Shown piece after piece: positions 13,059 to 18,525 of a DNA stretch of 64,000 nt. The notes below the pieces were generated by a model. The model was not told where the DNA came from, did not search any database, and was given only the letters and a program-made list of their open reading frames with translations. The position numbers were made by a program, and so were the translations under genes. The stretch lies in sequence record LC592711.1; one strand, 5' to 3'. Numbering within the stretch: position 1 is the stretch's first letter; each line of letters begins with the position of its first letter.

Positions 13059-13115
13059 GGATGTAACTCCTTGTGGTACAACATTTTAAAAGGTTTACAG
13101 CGGAAACTCACAATC

Positions 13116-13131
13116 GTTATATGTTTCTGAA
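13116..13131 (-). promoter_or_regulatory. Early promoter motif
   Basis: Minus strand TTCAGAAACATATAAC, 58 nt upstream of GTG 13058. Confidence 0.7.
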
Positions 13132-13299
13132 ACAATCTAGAGTTCCAACCTTTCAAAGAATCAAAGAGCATAGCTTTGAAAGACCGAAACGCCCTTTCGG
13201 ACGTCTCGGTTCTCTCTGGGGGGATGAATGTGGTTGTGTATCCCTCCAGATCATGGAGGGATCATAGTTTCTTTTTATACGCCTTCCACAGGCGTATCA

Positions 13300-13445
13300 C
13301 TTTTTTCTTTTCTTTCTTTCAAAAACTTTAGACTTATTATTCTTATTATTGTAAATACGTTAGTATTTACAATACTAACGTTTATAACTAATTCTAAAAT
13401 TCTCTCTACAAGGTTCTGGTCACATTTAGAAAAATATATGTTTAT
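13300..13445. other. Strongly AT-rich intergenic tract with overlapping inverted repeats (origin or regulatory candidate)
   Basis: T-runs and TTATTAT repeats; 12-bp IR at 13347-13374 overlaps an 11-bp IR at 13357-13381. Confidence 0.5.
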
Positions 13446-13542
13446 GCCTGTTAAGGCAGCAAAACTGTCCGGTAAAAATTCGGCAAGAAGCACAGATCAT
13501 CTGACATCCGTTCCACTATCAAACGCAAAGGACGAAACGAAC

Positions 13543-14190
13543 ATGGGCCTCGTAGGCACTCTGCGCGAGATCGAAAAAACCTCGCCCGAAGAACTCAACC
13601 GCTATTCCGAAAACCGTCCCGTCATGGTCGACGGTTCCCTGTCCGAACTCGTGACTCAGGCACTGAATGTCGCCTACACGAAAAAAGACATGACATCGGG
13701 TAAACCGTACTACGGTCATCAAAACGCAACGGGCGAACCGCCTCCTGGCGCAGGCAACATTCCCGACATCCTGAACCCGGATACTCCGCGTCAGGATCCG
13801 AACATCGTCAAGCCTTCGCTTGAAGGCATGCAGCAAATGGGCGCAGATGCAATTGCGACGGCAGCTGCTGTGCTCGAAGAAGCCGTCAACGTGAACGACG
13901 GCCACGAACACCGCGTGGGTGAAGATCCGCTCATGGTTTACGCCATTCCGGAAGACGGTAAGGTCACGGAAGAAATGAACGCGAACATCGACATGTACGG
14001 CGACTCCGGTGCCATGGATCCGTCGAACTTCGTGTTTGTTTTCACCGACAAGAACGATACTGTTGGAAGCATCGACTATCGTTGCGTCGATCTGAGCCAG
14101 AAAGTGAAGGACTACGAGAGCAAGGGCGCCAAGGTGTACCAGTCGCTCGAATCGTTCTTCCGCGACTACGACAACCTGCGTAAGAAGTAA
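13543..14190 (+). CDS. Conserved phiKZ-like (probable virion head) protein
   Basis: ATG 13543 with AAGGA RBS (215 aa); 'PSLEG' matches the S/A/G-x-E head-protease cleavage consensus; coupled to the next gene. Confidence 0.65.
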   Translation: MGLVGTLREIEKTSPEELNRYSENRPVMVDGSLSELVTQALNVAYTKKDMTSGKPYYGHQNATGEPPPGAGNIPDILNPDTPRQDPNIVKPSLEGMQQMGADAIATAAAVLEEAVNVNDGHEHRVGEDPLMVYAIPEDGKVTEEMNANIDMYGDSGAMDPSNFVFVFTDKNDTVGSIDYRCVDLSQKVKDYESKGAKVYQSLESFFRDYDNLRKK

Positions 14191-15437
14191 TGGACGGCCA
14201 GATCAAGAAAGTCCTGGATGCCGAATTCGATCACTTGCCGATCGACAAACGGCTCCTGGACAAAGTCCTGAAATACGAAAAGGATTTCATCAACAAGAAC
14301 GAAGACCATATCACCTTCTTCGGTGGTCACCTCATGGGGGTGCAGGTGGTTCGTTTCGATCCCCGAGATCGACAGTACTGGTTCGATGAAATCCTCGAAA
14401 TCAATGAGCAGGCTCTCGAAGAACCTCTCTACGCTCTGCGTGATCCGCATCATCCGAAAGATCCGCTGATCGACCCAGACTTCAATGTCCGCTCGGATGT
14501 CATGAACATCACCTGCGGATATCTCATCCATCGATTCCTCACCGCAAACCACCTTCCGCACGACAAGCAAAAGGAAGGCGCCGAATGTGTGGTGCGAATC
14601 ATGCTGTACAAGTTCCTGACTTCACTGCTCTGGAACTACTTCAAGTACCCGGCCAATCCTGCGGTAGCGGAAGCTACCTATAACGCTTTGTCGCTGAAGT
14701 TCGGCTTGAAGAAAAACGGCAACTGGAAAAAATACCTGGACGAACGCGCTCACATCACTGTCGAGCCTGGTTCGATCCACTACAAGACGCTTGTCAACAT
14801 GAAAGACGACGAGCAGTTCCTGTACTTCATCGGCGATACGCAGGGTCGTATTCGCGGCACGGTGAAATCGATCTATGCGATCTTCGACCAGATGAACAAG
14901 GCTGGTATCAAGATCGTCTCCGCCTCCTCTGTCATGGAGTACGATGGCGAAATGATCCTGAAGGACAAGTCGAGAACCTACCAGTCGGAAATCCGTTACA
15001 TCTCCGATGTGATTGGTGACCGCGGTTCGTTCATCAAGCCTGAACTTCTGAAGATCATTGAGAAGTCGGTGCCGACCGCCAACCCCGACATGTTGTTGAA
15101 GACTCTCCAGTGGATGTCTGACAACGCAGGTTATGGTAAGGACGACATCGTGAACCAGCTGACGACCAAGACGGTTATCTACTCGTTCAACTATCTCGCC
15201 CAGAATCCTGGACTCATCAAAGGCAAGCGCGACATCTCCGGCGTACTCTTCCGTTTGCGTGGTTCGTTTATGGCATCCCGTTCTTCGGACGAGGATCTCA
15301 TGCAACTGCGAGAAATGGCTGAGCAGATTGCTGGGTTCGCAACTGGCTCTCGCAACGACACGGTAAAGAAGTCGATCCGCACGGCGGTTCTGCTTTACAT
15401 CATCGGTCGGATCATGGCGAAGGACTACTACTCATGA
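14190..15437 (+). CDS. Conserved phiKZ-like virion structural protein (gp32-like)
   Basis: 415 aa; 'KNEDHITFFGGHLMGV' motif recalled from this family; synteny near terL. Confidence 0.65.
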   Translation: MDGQIKKVLDAEFDHLPIDKRLLDKVLKYEKDFINKNEDHITFFGGHLMGVQVVRFDPRDRQYWFDEILEINEQALEEPLYALRDPHHPKDPLIDPDFNVRSDVMNITCGYLIHRFLTANHLPHDKQKEGAECVVRIMLYKFLTSLLWNYFKYPANPAVAEATYNALSLKFGLKKNGNWKKYLDERAHITVEPGSIHYKTLVNMKDDEQFLYFIGDTQGRIRGTVKSIYAIFDQMNKAGIKIVSASSVMEYDGEMILKDKSRTYQSEIRYISDVIGDRGSFIKPELLKIIEKSVPTANPDMLLKTLQWMSDNAGYGKDDIVNQLTTKTVIYSFNYLAQNPGLIKGKRDISGVLFRLRGSFMASRSSDEDLMQLREMAEQIAGFATGSRNDTVKKSIRTAVLLYIIGRIMAKDYYS

Positions 15438-15856
15438 CGCGTGAAACCGTCACCGTCGATGAACTGAATCCCCTCCAGCTTGAGCAGTATCATGCCTTGC
15501 TGGAGGAGTCTGATAGTGAACCGATGTTCTACGGTAAGCCGTTAGACCGCAAAGCTAAACGTCAGATCGTCCTTGATGACGATGACAATGTCGTAGGGGC
15601 CTTTGAGTACACCCGCACCCTTTGGGAAGGTACGTACTACTGGCGAGCCAACCGTCCGTATGTCATGAAAGCGCATCGTGGCAAAGGACTGTTGTATCCT
15701 GCTCTTCGACTCTGGTTCTTAAATCGACGCCCGGCTCTTGCCTGGATCGATGACGAAAACCTTGCATCGATTCGCCTTTTCTTCTCGCTTGGCTTTTCGA
15801 GAGAATATGCGTACACGATGCACGGCAAGCTGGGACATTTTTACGTCCTTCATTAA
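15434..15856 (+). CDS. GNAT-family acetyltransferase
   Basis: Acetyl-CoA motif A 'YVMKAHRGKGL' and motif B 'NLASIRLFFSLGF'; ATGA overlap with the upstream gene. Confidence 0.8.
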   Translation: MTRETVTVDELNPLQLEQYHALLEESDSEPMFYGKPLDRKAKRQIVLDDDDNVVGAFEYTRTLWEGTYYWRANRPYVMKAHRGKGLLYPALRLWFLNRRPALAWIDDENLASIRLFFSLGFSREYAYTMHGKLGHFYVLH

Positions 15857-15886
15857 ACGCCATCAACTTAAGGTTAGGCACCCAAA

Positions 15887-16063
15887 ATGGCACCGCGCAC
15901 CAAGCTTCAGAAGTCAATGACCAATAACTCCAAGATTCGTGATGCTGTCACGAATTCGGCTGCAACCATTTCGGTGGGTGAGCCAAGCCTCATGTCTCGC
16001 CAAGGTGCCCCGAAGAGCATTAAAGTGCAAATCGGAAAAGGCGGGCTGGGGAAAGCAAAATAA
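15887..16063 (+). CDS. Small basic protein A (58 aa, not in ORF track)
   Basis: MAPRTKLQKSMTNNSKIRDAVTNSAATISVGEPSLMSRQGAPKSIKVQIGKGGLGKAK*; 11 K/R against 2 D/E. Confidence 0.7.
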   Translation: MAPRTKLQKSMTNNSKIRDAVTNSAATISVGEPSLMSRQGAPKSIKVQIGKGGLGKAK

Positions 16064-16117
16064 CAAAACGCAGTAGTCCTGGTCGTAATCTTTTGGATTA
16101 TTCACCGGGATTTGAAA

Positions 16118-16291
16118 ATGTCGAACCGACACCTCAAGCAGCACCTGATGCAGGCTACCTTGAAGCAGCACAAAGAGCATCACGTCAAGGATCTTTACAT
16201 CGTCACGGAATCGGAACATCGCGGCAAGCATGTCACGAGCACGGTTCATGTGAAGGTGGGTCGTGGCGGGCTGGAGCACGTCAAGAAGTAA
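16118..16291 (+). CDS. Small basic His-rich protein B (57 aa, not in ORF track), paralogue of A
   Basis: MSNRHLKQHLMQATLKQHKEHHVKDLYIVTESEHRGKHVTSTVHVKVGRGGLEHVKK*; 9 His; C-terminal V-x-[IV]-G-[KR]-GGL shared with A. Confidence 0.7.
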   Translation: MSNRHLKQHLMQATLKQHKEHHVKDLYIVTESEHRGKHVTSTVHVKVGRGGLEHVKK

Positions 16292-16303
16292 TCAGCATAA
16301 GTA

Positions 16304-16333
16304 CCTACTCCTACCCGCAAGGGTAGGAGTAGG
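16304..16333. terminator. 13-bp hairpin at a convergent junction
   Basis: cctactcctaccc-gcaa-gggtaggagtagg. Confidence 0.7.
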
Positions 16334-16344
16334 GCCTATGTCCG

Positions 16345-18525
16345 TCAATAAATGGTAGAACCAGAATCGACGACTCGACGATGTACCGTGTCGAGTAGAT
16401 TCTTGTCCCCGCCTTTTTGATAGCCGATACGTTTCTCTTCACGGGTCTTCTTGATCATGTCCGTAACAGAGAACGTTTCGCCTTCCTCTTCAACAACGCG
16501 CGATGCCAGGGCACCGATCTCGGCTTCGAGACGCATTTGTACGAAGTGGTCTTGCGCTCCACCCAATTTCTGAACCAGAGCCTGGATGTCTTCGCGCAAC
16601 TGACGTTGCTGGATTTCGAAGTGAGACATTTCACGCAGCGACTTCTTGGCCAGCGTGGAACTCATCACAGTCGTGTGGTCGATACCGTAGTAAGACAAGT
16701 TCTGACCGAACATTGCCAGGTAGCAAGCCAGCAGCCATGCCACACAGCCGTCGTCGTGCTGTCCCTTCGGGTGATCGACTCGACCATTCTTGACTTCGAG
16801 AGCCAGAATCTGATCGATGGTCTTGATATCGTTAACGCGGTCCATGCCGTGACGAACAGCATTTTGCAGAACCTGACCGTAGAGGATCGAACGTGCGTTC
16901 TCGCCAGAACCCGACGTGTTGTAACCGAAGTAGGACTTGTACTTGGTGTACAGATCACCCAGCACATACTTGTCGGCACGTTTGATTTCTTCCAGAACCT
17001 CCTTGTACTTCTCGGGATCCTGAACCAGACGGTTAAAGAGTCGCTTGAATGCATTCTGACCAGTCATGCGGAACTTCAGACACAGCTGGTCGATAATCGC
17101 AGGACCCATGTTCTTGCATTCGATGATCGCTACAAGCTTAGGCCACTTCATCAGGATGTCGTAGAGCCAGAGCGAATAGTCGATCACGTTAGCCATGTTC
17201 ACATAGCACGTGCCAATGACTTCAAGTGTTGTCAGGTCGACATATTGCATGCCGATCTCGTCCTTACCCTGAGCTTGGGAAGGATCAATACCGAGTGCGA
17301 TGTTGCCTTCTTCCATGAGTTGGTCACGGACTTTCAGGCTAACATACCACTTCGTCAAGAAGCGAGTCTTCGGATCGATTTCAGCAACGAAATCTTCACG
17401 CTGGTTTTCACGAAGCGTGTTCAGTTGTTCGGTAGACAGAGGAGATCCGCGGCCACCAGAAGTCCAGATGTTGAAGTAATCTCGATCGGCTTCTTCGCCG
17501 CTAATCATTGCCTTCTTGATGTTCTCGTAATGTTGCTTATCCGAGATACCAAGCATGCGGTGACCGAAAGTACAGTTGATTGCAAAGCCGTTGCTCGACG
17601 ATGCCTCAACCATCACCTTCAGGTCGTCCCAGTTACGCGCATCATAGATCTTGTCCGTAAACGGGAACGAGTTCGTCAGGATCTGATAAGCGTAGGAGCC
17701 ATCACGGTCATCTTTCTTACCGGCGGTAGTTGCCAGGATAATGCCGTGGTGTGCATTGTTTTCACGGGCAGAAACGAATGCCGCGTTGGTTGTCGACAGA
17801 ATCGTCGTCAGTGTAGCTTTCAGCCAGGAGATGTACGCAAATTCGTCAATCCGGATGTTGGCAGAAGTAAAGCCTCGGCCCACCTTGTAGGCACCCTTCT
17901 CATCCATCCGAGGAACGTGCGTCTCGTACTTGTTTTCCAGTGCAGACAAGTAGATGTATTCCTGGTTGTTTGGATCTTTCTTCGGTATCGATCTTCGTAG
18001 ATACGGAGGTAAGACTTCTTCATATTCCTTCAGACGCTCGATGTCGTTACGACGCAGCTGGTCTTCTTTCGTCAACAAGTGAATGGACGAGTGAACCAGA
18101 CCGAAGTTAAGCAGGTAGCGGTCAAGTGAAGCGATGTTCACAGACTTACCAGTCTGACGAGGCTGAATCAGGAATGTCGTGATGTGGTTGAAGTAACTCC
18201 ACCACAGAGCCAGGTTCCCGCGGTTGGCTAGAACAGGACTCGGTTGCATTGCGCCCTGAACAGGAATGCGCGCAATCTCACGGAAGTAGTACCAGGGGTT
18301 ATCGAAACACTCCTGGGTAATCATGCCCTTGTATTCGAAGGACAGATTCGGATCGAAGGGATCTACCCCGACCAGATATTTGTTGTGTAACGCCAGGGGC
18401 CAGAGGTTATTCTGGATGCCCATGTCGTCAAGAATGTAGCAAATGTCAACGAAGGACTTGTTTCGGGTTTCCAGATCGATGGTTGCATCCGGATACCGAT
18501 TCCAGTCTTCTTGGAAAAGAATCAT
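16345..18525 (-). CDS. terL: Terminase large subunit (phiKZ gp25-like)
   Basis: Walker A 'PRQTGKS', Walker B 'IRIDEF', nuclease 'GIDPS' and 'HDD'; 726 aa. Confidence 0.92.
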   Translation of the reverse strand: MILFQEDWNRYPDATIDLETRNKSFVDICYILDDMGIQNNLWPLALHNKYLVGVDPFDPNLSFEYKGMITQECFDNPWYYFREIARIPVQGAMQPSPVLANRGNLALWWSYFNHITTFLIQPRQTGKSVNIASLDRYLLNFGLVHSSIHLLTKEDQLRRNDIERLKEYEEVLPPYLRRSIPKKDPNNQEYIYLSALENKYETHVPRMDEKGAYKVGRGFTSANIRIDEFAYISWLKATLTTILSTTNAAFVSARENNAHHGIILATTAGKKDDRDGSYAYQILTNSFPFTDKIYDARNWDDLKVMVEASSSNGFAINCTFGHRMLGISDKQHYENIKKAMISGEEADRDYFNIWTSGGRGSPLSTEQLNTLRENQREDFVAEIDPKTRFLTKWYVSLKVRDQLMEEGNIALGIDPSQAQGKDEIGMQYVDLTTLEVIGTCYVNMANVIDYSLWLYDILMKWPKLVAIIECKNMGPAIIDQLCLKFRMTGQNAFKRLFNRLVQDPEKYKEVLEEIKRADKYVLGDLYTKYKSYFGYNTSGSGENARSILYGQVLQNAVRHGMDRVNDIKTIDQILALEVKNGRVDHPKGQHDDGCVAWLLACYLAMFGQNLSYYGIDHTTVMSSTLAKKSLREMSHFEIQQRQLREDIQALVQKLGGAQDHFVQMRLEAEIGALASRVVEEEGETFSVTDMIKKTREEKRIGYQKGGDKNLLDTVHRRVVDSGSTIY

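Follow-up and report, generated by a model that had tools for sequence, protein, structure and literature searches.

Small basic DNA binders whose affinity is lowered by a GNAT acetyltransferase are exemplified by archaeal Alba, which is paired with Pat, and by the eukaryotic histone H4 tail, which is paired with histone acetyltransferases (HATs) or with NatD, the acetyltransferase for the N-terminus of histones H4 and H2A. In the GNAT/RHH pairs TacAT, AtaRT and KacAT, a GNAT toxin of about 160-175 aa is combined with an RHH antitoxin of roughly 90 aa that is normally encoded upstream. The phage proteins Rac and AcrVA5 act on host RNA polymerase or Cas12a, and we know of no report in which either of them is accompanied by two genes for small basic partners. 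The internal proteins IPI, IPII and IPIII of phage T4 are dispensable and possess an N-terminal capsid-targeting propeptide that is cut by the prohead protease. Here, a locus of Burkholderia phage FLC6 is described in which a GNAT-fold gene, gp22, is followed by the genes of two small basic proteins, gp23 and gp24. These three genes are best explained as an accessory cassette of about 0.86 kb that is specific to Chiangmaivirus phages and was inserted between gp21 and the convergent terminase gene.

Organization of the locus

The analyzed window, a stretch of 64,000 nucleotides, is the left end of the FLC6 genome (LC592711; 100% identity, with equal coordinates). FLC6, of the genus Chiangmaivirus (Chimalliviridae), is a jumbo phage of plant-pathogenic Burkholderia and Ralstonia. 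Chiangmaivirus phages are being investigated for the biocontrol of rice and tomato pathogens. In the FLC6 record, gp22, gp23 and gp24 are each annotated as "hypothetical protein". The features of the locus are collected in Table 1.

Table 1. Features of the FLC6 gp21-gp25 region (positions in the window).
Feature	Position	Strand	Support
gp21, phiKZ gp32 homologue (structural head protein)	14190..15437	+	phrog_2921, E 9e-151
gp22, compact 140-aa GNAT-fold acetyltransferase ("GNAT2"; predicted)	15434..15856	+	family profile and predicted fold
Shine-Dalgarno-like AAGGTTAGG 5' of gp23 ATG	15870..15878	+	conserved
gp23, 58-aa protein	15887..16063	+	annotated CDS; intact in all relatives
gp23 C-terminal module, residues 43-58, [ST]x[VIL]KVQ[IVL]GK[GR]G[LMI][GE]..K(K)	16013..16060	+	common to gp24
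gp24, 57-aa His- and Lys-rich protein	16118..16291	+	phrog_33880, E 9e-40
gp24 C-terminal module, residues 41-57, [ST]x[VT]HVK[VI]GRxG[LVI]E[HQ]V..KK	16238..16288	+	common to gp23
13-bp perfect hairpin, stem 16304-16316 / 16321-16333, GCAA loop	16304..16333		-31.8 kcal/mol, z -6.6
terminase large subunit gene, FLC6 gp25 (annotated "hypothetical")	16345..18525	-	phrog_2, E 6e-55

The upstream gene of the operon, gp21, is the sole family-wide core gene of this plus-strand island. Its homologues were found by tblastn in at least 284 phage records (284-291 phiKZ-like records), including PHIKZ032 of phiKZ, which is annotated as "structural head protein", and its dN/dS is 0.02-0.055. An earlier sequence-only reading of this DNA had proposed that the GNAT gene is translationally coupled to a core virion gene and that the unit ends at a 13-bp hairpin, and both proposals held. 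The stop codon of gp21 and the start codon of gp22 overlap as ATGA (15434-15437), no terminator was detected between gp21 and gp22-gp24, and these three genes close the head-gene operon and adjoin the terminase gene. The hairpin is located between the convergent gp24 and terminase genes, and a stem of 12-14 bp is present in all nine relatives checked (9/9), with stem sequences that differ through compensatory changes. It has no U-tract on the plus strand and is not listed by a simple terminator scan; it is probably the terminator for both directions. No relevant match to Rfam was obtained. In RSL2, RSF1 and SURPRISE13, the gp25 orthologue carries the annotation terminase large subunit, and this convergent neighbour marks the right edge of the insertion.

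The three cassette members are real genes under purifying selection (dN/dS 0.09-0.24 for gp22, 0.06-0.30 for gp23 and 0.03-0.19 for gp24). The lengths of the two small ORFs and their counts of Lys, Arg, His and acidic residues, as first listed, were exact on recount, and their conservation (dN/dS 0.03-0.30, kept by every relative) establishes both as genes. The 20 nt 5' of the gp23 ATG are near-invariant across five genomes. For gp24, the ATG at 16118 is conserved and the TTG at 16112 is not. The RefSeq annotation of RSL2 omits two ORFs, among them that of gp23, which is intact in this phage as well.

The predicted GNAT fold of gp22

The assignment of gp22 as a GNAT, made in the earlier reading, is supported by the family profile and the predicted fold and not by the Pfam score of the protein itself, since FLC6 gp22 alone reaches only 18.4 bits against PF00583, below the cut-off of 20.7. 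All ten aligned family members (10/10) match PF00583 and PF13508, the best at about 3e-9, and a search of the family profile against the PDB gave 48 matches, nearly all of them named acetyltransferases, with YncA (3dr6, 5e-8) as the best. The AF2 model (pLDDT 86.5) has an order of elements that fits a GNAT (beta1-alpha1-alpha2-beta2-4-alpha3-beta5-alpha4-beta6), and Foldseek returned 218 PDB and 53 viral matches at E <= 1e-3; those that are named are nearly all acetyltransferases, as are all of the best 50 of the 218 PDB matches. By model and profile, a GNAT fold for gp22 is clear. The nearest solved GNATs are YncA, phosphinothricin acetyltransferase, SpeG and NatD, which are small-molecule or N-terminal acetyltransferases.

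The motif A loop of gp22 reads R82-G-K-G85-L-L. Its Arg and central Gly are invariant and its last position is Leu or Met, not Gly or Ala, in all close orthologues. The pyrophosphate of acetyl-CoA is bound by this loop of GNATs (Q/R-x-x-G-x-G/A) via backbone amides, so acetyltransferase activity of gp22 is plausible despite the Leu or Met residue. The N-terminal third of GNATs usually lines the acceptor site; it is acidic in gp22, which suggests a cationic acceptor. No cellular relative of gp22 was found by a pattern scan of 185,579 cellular species genomes, and the same kind of scan of IMG/VR detected the protein in RSL2 and RSF1 only.

Two small basic proteins with a common C-terminal module

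gp23 contains 8 Lys, 3 Arg, 2 acidic residues and no His (pI 11.2, net charge about +8.5), and gp24 contains 9 His, 8 Lys, 3 Arg and 5 acidic residues (pI 10.1, net charge about +6). Overall, the pI of these proteins of about 58 aa ranges from 9.9 to 11.2 and the net charge from +5 to +8.5. Both proteins lack Cys, and their tails are not rich in Ser or Thr. In the AF2 model of gp24, which is of low confidence (pLDDT 61), residues 1-25 form a disordered arm and residues 26-54 a three-strand beta-meander with predicted strands at 26-34, 37-48 and 51-54. Searches of Pfam, PHROGs, NCBIfam and PADLOC with gp23 and gp24 gave nothing beyond phrog_33880 for gp24 itself and a chance DnaA fragment, and their profiles gave only chance matches against all PDB sequences at E <= 10, neither histone nor Alba. 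None of gp22-24 is among the 16 gene products that the FLC6 paper lists as seemingly structural for the virion, and the accessible literature holds no expression, proteomic, binding or localization data on them.

The two proteins share a C-terminal module. BLASTP aligned gp23 with gp24 of FLC6 at E 7e-4 and the two RSF1 proteins at 2e-5, the score was matched by 21 of 20000 shuffles for FLC6 and by 0 of 20000 for both RSF1 and SURPRISE13, and profile-profile comparison (hhalign) gave E 3.3e-5 over 22 columns. The alignment of the C-termini noticed earlier is thus beyond chance; it spans about 15-22 residues, and no second copy of the motif in this form is present in any of the six reading frames of the 64-kb window. 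The term paralogues, which had been applied to the pair, is justified for the C-terminal 18-22 residues only. A global alignment without the last 20 residues was no better than shuffles (p 0.35-0.75). A likeness at the N-terminus, M[AS]xRxKxQxxM, was noticed post hoc and is seen for some pairs (p 0.0002-0.01) and not for others. A G-x-E near both C-termini resembles A-X-E, the protease motif of phage SPN3US (PMC10052503). As a protease site it was rejected, since cleavage would take off only 4 residues and it is absent from FLC6 gp23.

The tails had been described as ending in G[KR]GGL, with a resemblance to the acetylatable H4 tail that was itself judged to be short and probably convergent. 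The "GGL" proved to be specific to FLC6 and not a feature of the family, whose motif is G[KR]xG[LIVM]; seven of the 11 gp23 variants read GKRG[MIL]E[KA][VA]KK. The H4-like string GKGGLGK is confined to gp23 of the subclade of FLC6, RSL2 and RsoM3USA, and the caution about convergence was well placed. The tails do not classify as H4-like, with the string unconserved, Arg in gp24 and no histone among the profile matches. At the motif position, an invariant Lys in gp23 corresponds to an invariant Arg in gp24, so that charge and not an acetylatable Lys is conserved there, which speaks mildly against a link to acetylation. In the C-terminal KK, the Lys is invariant in gp23 and the KK is invariant in gp24.

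Distribution of the cassette and a hotspot at the gp21/terminase junction

Relatives were sought by tblastn of 50,697 phage records, pattern scans of IMG/VR, a word search of 5.8 billion proteins and a HMMER search of all 1.84 billion representatives. The genes gp22, gp23 and gp24 were restricted to Chiangmaivirus records and close relatives from metagenomes, and these searches detected no relatives of gp23 or gp24 outside the Chiangmaivirus clade, which makes them orphan families. Each of the 11 phage records with matches (11/11) and each metagenome contig that was examined has both genes intact. Six giant repeat proteins from the search of representatives were rejected as artefacts; they scored 1-12 bits per repeat, summed over up to 32 repeats, and match the beta stretch of gp24 through the strand-turn-strand motif of Ig/cadherin-like repeats. 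EL gp12 (98 aa), encoded at the same position in phage EL, was likewise dismissed as a counterpart for want of any visible likeness.

In the sister phages RP12 and FLC1-1B, the gp21 homologue is directly followed by the convergent terminase gene, and in phiKZ and Noxifer gp32 is not followed by genes of this kind. The core genome of Chimalliviridae has been defined as those genes that more than 90% of chimallin-encoding phages possess (PMC10299810). In contrast to gp21, gp22-gp24 are not core genes of this family. Because it is absent from all other Chimalliviridae examined, the cassette cannot be needed for the packaging of large genomes or for the phage nucleus as such. Its G+C content equals that of its flanks and gave no signal of horizontal transfer.

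The junction between gp21 and the terminase gene is a hotspot of insertion and allele exchange in Chiangmaivirus phages. Most relatives carry a second, unrelated GNAT gene (GNAT1) upstream of gp21, which FLC6 has lost by deletion, and extra ORFs of 64 aa and 182 aa lie between gp21 and GNAT2 in metagenome relatives. Despite these indels all around, GNAT2, gp23 and gp24 were never found apart in about 15 genomes or contigs. Co-occurrence had been put forward as a check on a functional link, and the pairing is indeed perfect, with no relative that has the peptides and lacks the GNAT. Nevertheless, it represents a single evolutionary event and not independent evidence because it is confined to one genus with a fixed gene order. 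The GNAT of RSL2 is strongly diverged (70% nucleotide and 71% amino acid identity) compared with the peptides (94-95% and 98%, respectively). The enzyme and the peptides are thus exchanged independently of each other, which argues mildly against an acetylation link between them.

Possible roles of the cassette

Tentatively, gp23 and gp24 are taken to be late-made small putative nucleic-acid-binding proteins that consist of a disordered basic arm and a beta-meander and are encoded beside a fast-evolving GNAT; we regard this as a possible reading that falls clearly short of being probable. The cassette would be read together with the head gene gp21 and would for this reason probably be expressed late, a timing that is taken from the neighbour gene only. 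Each small protein would combine a disordered arm rich in Lys and Arg, and in gp24 also in His, with a subsequent amphipathic beta-meander terminating in KK, as in the low-confidence model available for gp24 only. The meander may allow gp23 and gp24 to pair, to oligomerize or to dock on a partner, and the arms and tails may neutralize or bind nucleic acid during head filling or inside the head, a role comparable to that of the T4 internal proteins, which are likewise small and basic. The GNAT would be a separately evolving enzyme for a cationic acceptor, linked to the peptides by position only. Basic charge alone is no proof of nucleic-acid binding.

A different division of labour, which is somewhat unlikely, is that the GNAT targets a host protein, a polyamine or amino-acid-like amine, or a phage protein such as gp21, and that gp23 and gp24 are independent accessories sharing the same slot, for example as binders of host RNA, ribosomes or defence proteins. 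Consistent with this, gp22 diverges much more quickly than the genes around it (dN up to 0.46 versus 0.02 for gp21) and forms an island of divergence, a pattern common in host-interaction genes, and it lies in an insertion hotspot (GNAT1 and the two extra ORFs). Phage GNATs with host targets exist, such as Rac of phiKMV-like phages (PMC7552054), and the solved relatives nearest to gp22 are YncA, phosphinothricin acetyltransferase and SpeG. However, the three genes have stayed together through nearby indels, no match to a defence or anti-defence family was obtained, and the sequence names no target.

Acetylation of Lys residues in the gp23 and gp24 tails by gp22, which would tune DNA binding as in an acetylation-controlled "mini-histone" module, is improbable. 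The enzyme and the peptides are strictly adjacent in every genome that has them, at the end of a head-gene operon and beside the terminase gene; the two peptides are strongly basic, with an invariant Lys at the gp23 motif position and the C-terminal Lys residues described above, gp24 has a predicted disordered N-terminal arm (at low confidence) and the acidity of the GNAT in its N-terminal third points to a cationic acceptor. NatD is among the fold matches, but it is level with many unrelated GNATs, and the best sequence relatives are small-molecule acetyltransferases. Further points against this proposal are the unconserved GKGGLGK string, the Arg at the motif position of all gp24 sequences, the profile search without histone similarity, the replacement of the GNAT allele but not of the peptides in RSL2, the single phylogenetic event behind the co-occurrence, and the distant GNAT homologues of FLC1-1B and FLC9, which have no such peptides adjoining. 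A scheme in which gp23 and gp24 coat or condense the DNA of the phage and the neighbouring GNAT switches their charge by acetylating Lys residues or the N-terminus is decidedly unlikely.

The chances are equally slim that gp22 is an N-alpha acetyltransferase of the RimI/Nat type that, once Met has been removed, caps gp23 and gp24 at their conserved Met-Ala or Met-Ser starts. All 11 gp23 variants in public data start with MA and all eight gp24 variants with MS or MA, and RimI, NatA, NatC and NatD are among the profile and fold matches; however, proteins of any proteome often have a small residue behind Met, SpeG and PAT are matched at least as well as the Nat and RimI proteins, and the NCBIfam rimI model matches GNAT1 and not gp22. 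Hardly credible are the readings of the GNAT as a toxin accompanied by small antitoxins, or as a RiPP-like enzyme accompanied by two precursor peptides. The gene sizes and tandem small ORFs recall both kinds of system, and the conserved segment at the C-terminus might be taken for a core or recognition sequence. Against these readings, the small genes lie downstream of the GNAT, gp24 is predicted (at low confidence) to be all-beta, PADLOC, NCBIfam and Pfam gave no matches, the cassette has no class-defining RiPP enzyme, protease or exporter, and the peptides have neither Cys nor Ser/Thr-rich tails.

If gp23 and gp24 are packaged or act at packaging, the cassette would show in compact form how one jumbo-phage lineage supplements a conserved module of head and terminase genes with counter-ions or DNA-handling proteins of its own. 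Modification of gp23 and gp24 by the GNAT would be a first case of a phage-encoded enzyme-substrate pair of that kind, and control of their DNA binding by acetylation would provide a viral analogue, from the bacterial world, of acetylation-controlled chromatin in a nucleus-forming jumbo phage. The present value is more modest and lies in a clean annotation of three "hypothetical" genes, the recognition of the gp23/gp24 module and of two ORFs absent from the RSL2 RefSeq annotation, and the identification of the hotspot at the gp21/terminase junction.

Comparison with known systems

gp22 resembles the small-molecule N-acetyltransferases YncA/MnaT (3dr6), phosphinothricin acetyltransferase (1yr0) and SpeG, its best profile and fold matches, in fold and order of secondary structure elements, in the R-G-x-G acetyl-CoA loop and in an N..S/A..LGF segment. 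It differs from them in its length of 140 aa, being shorter at both ends than the references of 165-175 aa, and in the Leu or Met at the last position of the loop, with 12-21% identity and TM scores of 0.5-0.6. With Rac (PMC7552054) and AcrVA5 it has in common that all are small, quick-evolving phage accessory proteins of GNAT fold, with no detectable sequence relation. The cassette resembles TacAT, AtaRT and KacAT in having a small GNAT beside small genes, but it does not belong to the GNAT/RHH toxin-antitoxin systems, as the gene order is reversed and neither an RHH signature nor a family match is present. Alba with Pat and H4 with its HATs supply the functional picture for an acetylation-controlled DNA binder, and the beta-meander predicted for gp24 at low confidence is unlike the Alba or the histone fold. 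T4 IPI, IPII and IPIII have no sequence similarity to gp23 and gp24, for which no capsid-targeting propeptide signal could be shown, and the likeness is one of proposed role only, that of small, basic, lineage-specific accessories made together with the head proteins.

Locus and gene neighbourhood

The genes gp22, gp23 and gp24 are a real, conserved and genus-restricted three-gene cassette. Positions 14000-17000 of the window match Burkholderia phage FLC6 (LC592711) with 100% identity and no shift in coordinates. This jumbo phage has a 227-kb genome and belongs to Chiangmaivirus, a genus of the nucleus-forming Chimalliviridae (PMC11898562). The cassette forms the last genes of a short plus-strand island, gp20-gp24, beyond which the convergent terminase large-subunit gene gp25 is located; in FLC6 the latter carries the label 'hypothetical protein' though it encodes the terminase large subunit. 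The neighbouring gp21 is homologous to phiKZ gp32 ('structural head protein' by annotation) and present in 284-291 phiKZ-like phage records, and by sequence comparison it is the only member of the island that belongs to the family-wide core. The sequence-only reading described the GNAT gene as coupled to a core virion gene, and the gp22 start and gp21 stop codons do overlap as ATGA; its descriptive statements on the locus all hold.

Upstream of the island, an AT-rich gap at 13059-13542 (G+C 0.34-0.36) separates the divergent genes gp19 (-) and gp20 (+) and contains two terminator-like plus-strand hairpins at 13240-13262 and 13277-13297. This gap probably serves gp20-gp24 as promoter and regulatory region. 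A mechanically called ORF at 13228-14190 is too long for gp20, whose start is annotated at 13543. At the other end, the 13-bp hairpin said to close the unit was located. A perfect stem of 12-14 bp with a 4-nt loop is kept in nine of nine relatives examined, and as several different stem sequences occur among them, the hairpin has undergone compensatory change.

Coordinates of genes and other features at the gp20-gp25 locus and in relatives
Feature	Position	Strand	Remarks
gp20	13543-14190	+	215 aa; genus-specific at BLAST level, only 11 records
gp22 (GNAT2)	15434-15856	+	'hypothetical' in FLC6 annotation
gp23	15887-16063	+	'hypothetical' in FLC6 annotation
gp24	16118-16291	+	'hypothetical' in FLC6 annotation
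Hairpin	stem 16304-16316 / 16321-16333		-31.8 kcal/mol, z -6.6
gp25, terminase large subunit	16345-18525	-	phrog_2, E 6e-55; so named in relatives
GNAT2 divergence island	15438-15856		against L003:2894-3310 (RSL2)
Second GNAT	L002:1192-1646 (FLC8); L003:1192-1644 (RSL2)		compare window 14188-14192
Extra ORFs between gp21 and GNAT2	L018:3356-3550; L021:3008-3556		64 aa; 182 aa; two metagenome relatives
RSL2 gp22 orthologue	L003:2894-3310		138 aa; unannotated in RefSeq; one feature over match in GenBank copy
RSL2 gp23 orthologue	L003:3340-3516		58 aa; no feature in RefSeq or GenBank copy

gp23 and gp24 are genuine genes

Both small genes are genuine. Each of the 11 matching phage records (FLC6, FLC8, three FLC4 isolates, RsoM3USA and SURPRISE13, with RSL2 and RSF1 each counted twice, from GenBank and RefSeq) contains them as intact reading frames, as do the metagenome contigs examined. 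Pairwise dN/dS ranged from 0.06 to 0.30 for gp23 and from 0.03 to 0.19 for gp24 (dS up to 0.97). The approximately 20 nt upstream of the gp23 ATG, which include AAGGTTAGG, show almost no variation; the ATG at 16118 is the conserved start of gp24 and the upstream TTG of the RSL2 record is not conserved. In the RSL2 RefSeq record (NC_028950) the interval between ORF021 and ORF022 has no annotation, yet intact gp22 and gp23 orthologues are present. The residue counts first given for both peptides were exact, and their pI values are 11.2 (gp23) and 10.1 (gp24).

The two peptides had been called paralogues with aligning C-termini, which is shown for a C-terminal module only. BLASTP between them gave an E-value of 7e-4 in FLC6 and of 2e-5 in RSF1, the observed score was equalled by 21 of 20000 shuffles for FLC6 and by none for RSF1 and SURPRISE13, and profile-profile comparison gave an E-value of 3.3e-5 over 22 columns. 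Outside this module no significant likeness of gp23 to gp24 was detected, and an N-terminal M[AS]xRxKxQxxM resemblance is only suggestive. Members of the family share the motif [VIL]x[VIL]G[KR]xG[LIVM][EG]..K(K), which across the six frames of the 64-kb window occurs only in the gp23 and gp24 ORFs. The proposed G[KR]GGL tail has to be abandoned in its 'GGL' part, which is not conserved: seven of the 11 gp23 variants have GKRG[MIL]E[KA][VA]KK at this place, and the form seen in gp24 is GR[GHN]G[LVI]E. Five histidines are invariant in gp24 and none occurs in gp23. The structural model of gp24 is weak (pLDDT 61), with residues 1-25 lacking predicted structure and three predicted strands (26-34, 37-48, 51-54) that agree with alternating polar and hydrophobic residues there.

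Distribution and evolution of the cassette

No relative of gp23 or gp24 beyond the Chiangmaivirus clade was detected in phage records, IMG/VR or 5.8 billion proteins, or when 1.84 billion representative sequences were searched in full with HMMER. Large repeat proteins (P0025-P0030, from the search of representative proteins) were rejected as gp24 relatives. These giant proteins of up to 3669 aa carry repeats of approximately 92 aa with the strand-turn-strand motif 'FxVTxSDGxGGxTTSTV', and their E-value of 7e-44 against the 59-position gp24 profile is a summation artefact, arising only because scores of 1-12 bits from as many as 32 individual repeats are added together. The case calls for caution over whole-sequence E-values with short profiles.

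The distribution of gp22 is nearly as restricted; its sole other relatives are 28%-identical proteins in FLC1-1B, FLC4-3B and FLC9, encoded elsewhere in the genome without such peptides alongside. In RP12 and FLC1-1B, the closest outgroups that share this gene order, the gp21 homologue is directly followed by the convergent terminase gene, and in phiKZ, Noxifer and EL neither a GNAT nor similar peptides were found at the corresponding position. The clade-only distribution and the outgroup gene order thus identify gp22-gp24 as a lineage-specific insertion outside the family core. Within the clade the three genes always stay together, yet their surroundings are fluid.

Most relatives (FLC8, FLC4-11C, RSL2, RSF1, RsoM3USA, SURPRISE13 and metagenome relatives) carry a second GNAT of 127-144 aa with weak RimI-like matches between gp20 and gp21, which has no detectable relationship to GNAT2 (E 0.92). 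A clean deletion of approximately 456 bp has removed it from FLC6, FLC4-4C and FLC4-5C, and in FLC6 the gp20 stop and gp21 start overlap as TAATG (14188-14192) where it is missing. The extra ORFs in two metagenome relatives, neither of which has a Pfam match, show that the gp21-GNAT2 junction accepts insertions. FLC6 and RSL2 are 93% identical at the nucleotide level in gp21, 70% in GNAT2 and 94-95% in gp23 and gp24, a sequence pattern suggesting that recombination within the cassette replaced the GNAT2 allele. As GNAT2 is an island of divergence beside nearly unchanged peptide genes, enzyme and peptides are exchanged independently.

Possible functions of the cassette

The FLC6 gp22 sequence alone scored 18.4 bits against PF00583, under the threshold of 20.7. 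A profile of ten relatives matched 48 PDB sequences, named acetyltransferases nearly throughout, headed by YncA (5e-8) and phosphinothricin acetyltransferase (6e-7), and all ten family members matched PF00583 and PF13508. The AlphaFold model (pLDDT 86.5) has the GNAT order of elements, and Foldseek returned 218 PDB matches at E<=1e-3, with SpeG first and NatD, NatA and PAT included; it also returned viral GNATs, some from other Chimalliviridae. Together, the family profile, Pfam, AlphaFold and Foldseek results establish gp22 as a GNAT by fold and family, with a putative enzyme activity.

The papers examined contain no report of expression, virion presence or modification for gp22, gp23 or gp24. 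The reading ranked first, held tentatively, is that gp23 and gp24 would be small, late-made proteins that bind nucleic acid or neutralise charge, using a basic arm and a beta-meander that may serve pairing or docking, and that the adjoining GNAT would evolve independently of them. Ranked second, and only slightly less likely, is a GNAT directed at a host target or a small molecule, with the peptides as unrelated accessory proteins. The lysine-acetylation switch proposed earlier, in which the GNAT modifies the peptides, comes third and is improbable. It drew on an H4-like tail, but this string is not conserved and is no family feature; the motif lysine of gp23 is an invariant arginine in gp24, the GNAT allele was swapped and the peptides were not, the best relatives of the GNAT are small-molecule enzymes, and the co-occurrence amounts to one event. 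These sequence-level tests argue mildly against the switch, none of them decisively. N-terminal acetylation at the conserved Met-Ala or Met-Ser starts is less probable again, and a toxin-antitoxin or RiPP-like system is hardly credible.

Compared with the GNAT signature Q/R-x-x-G-x-G/A, the acetyl-CoA loop of gp22, R-G-K-G-L-L, deviates at the last position.
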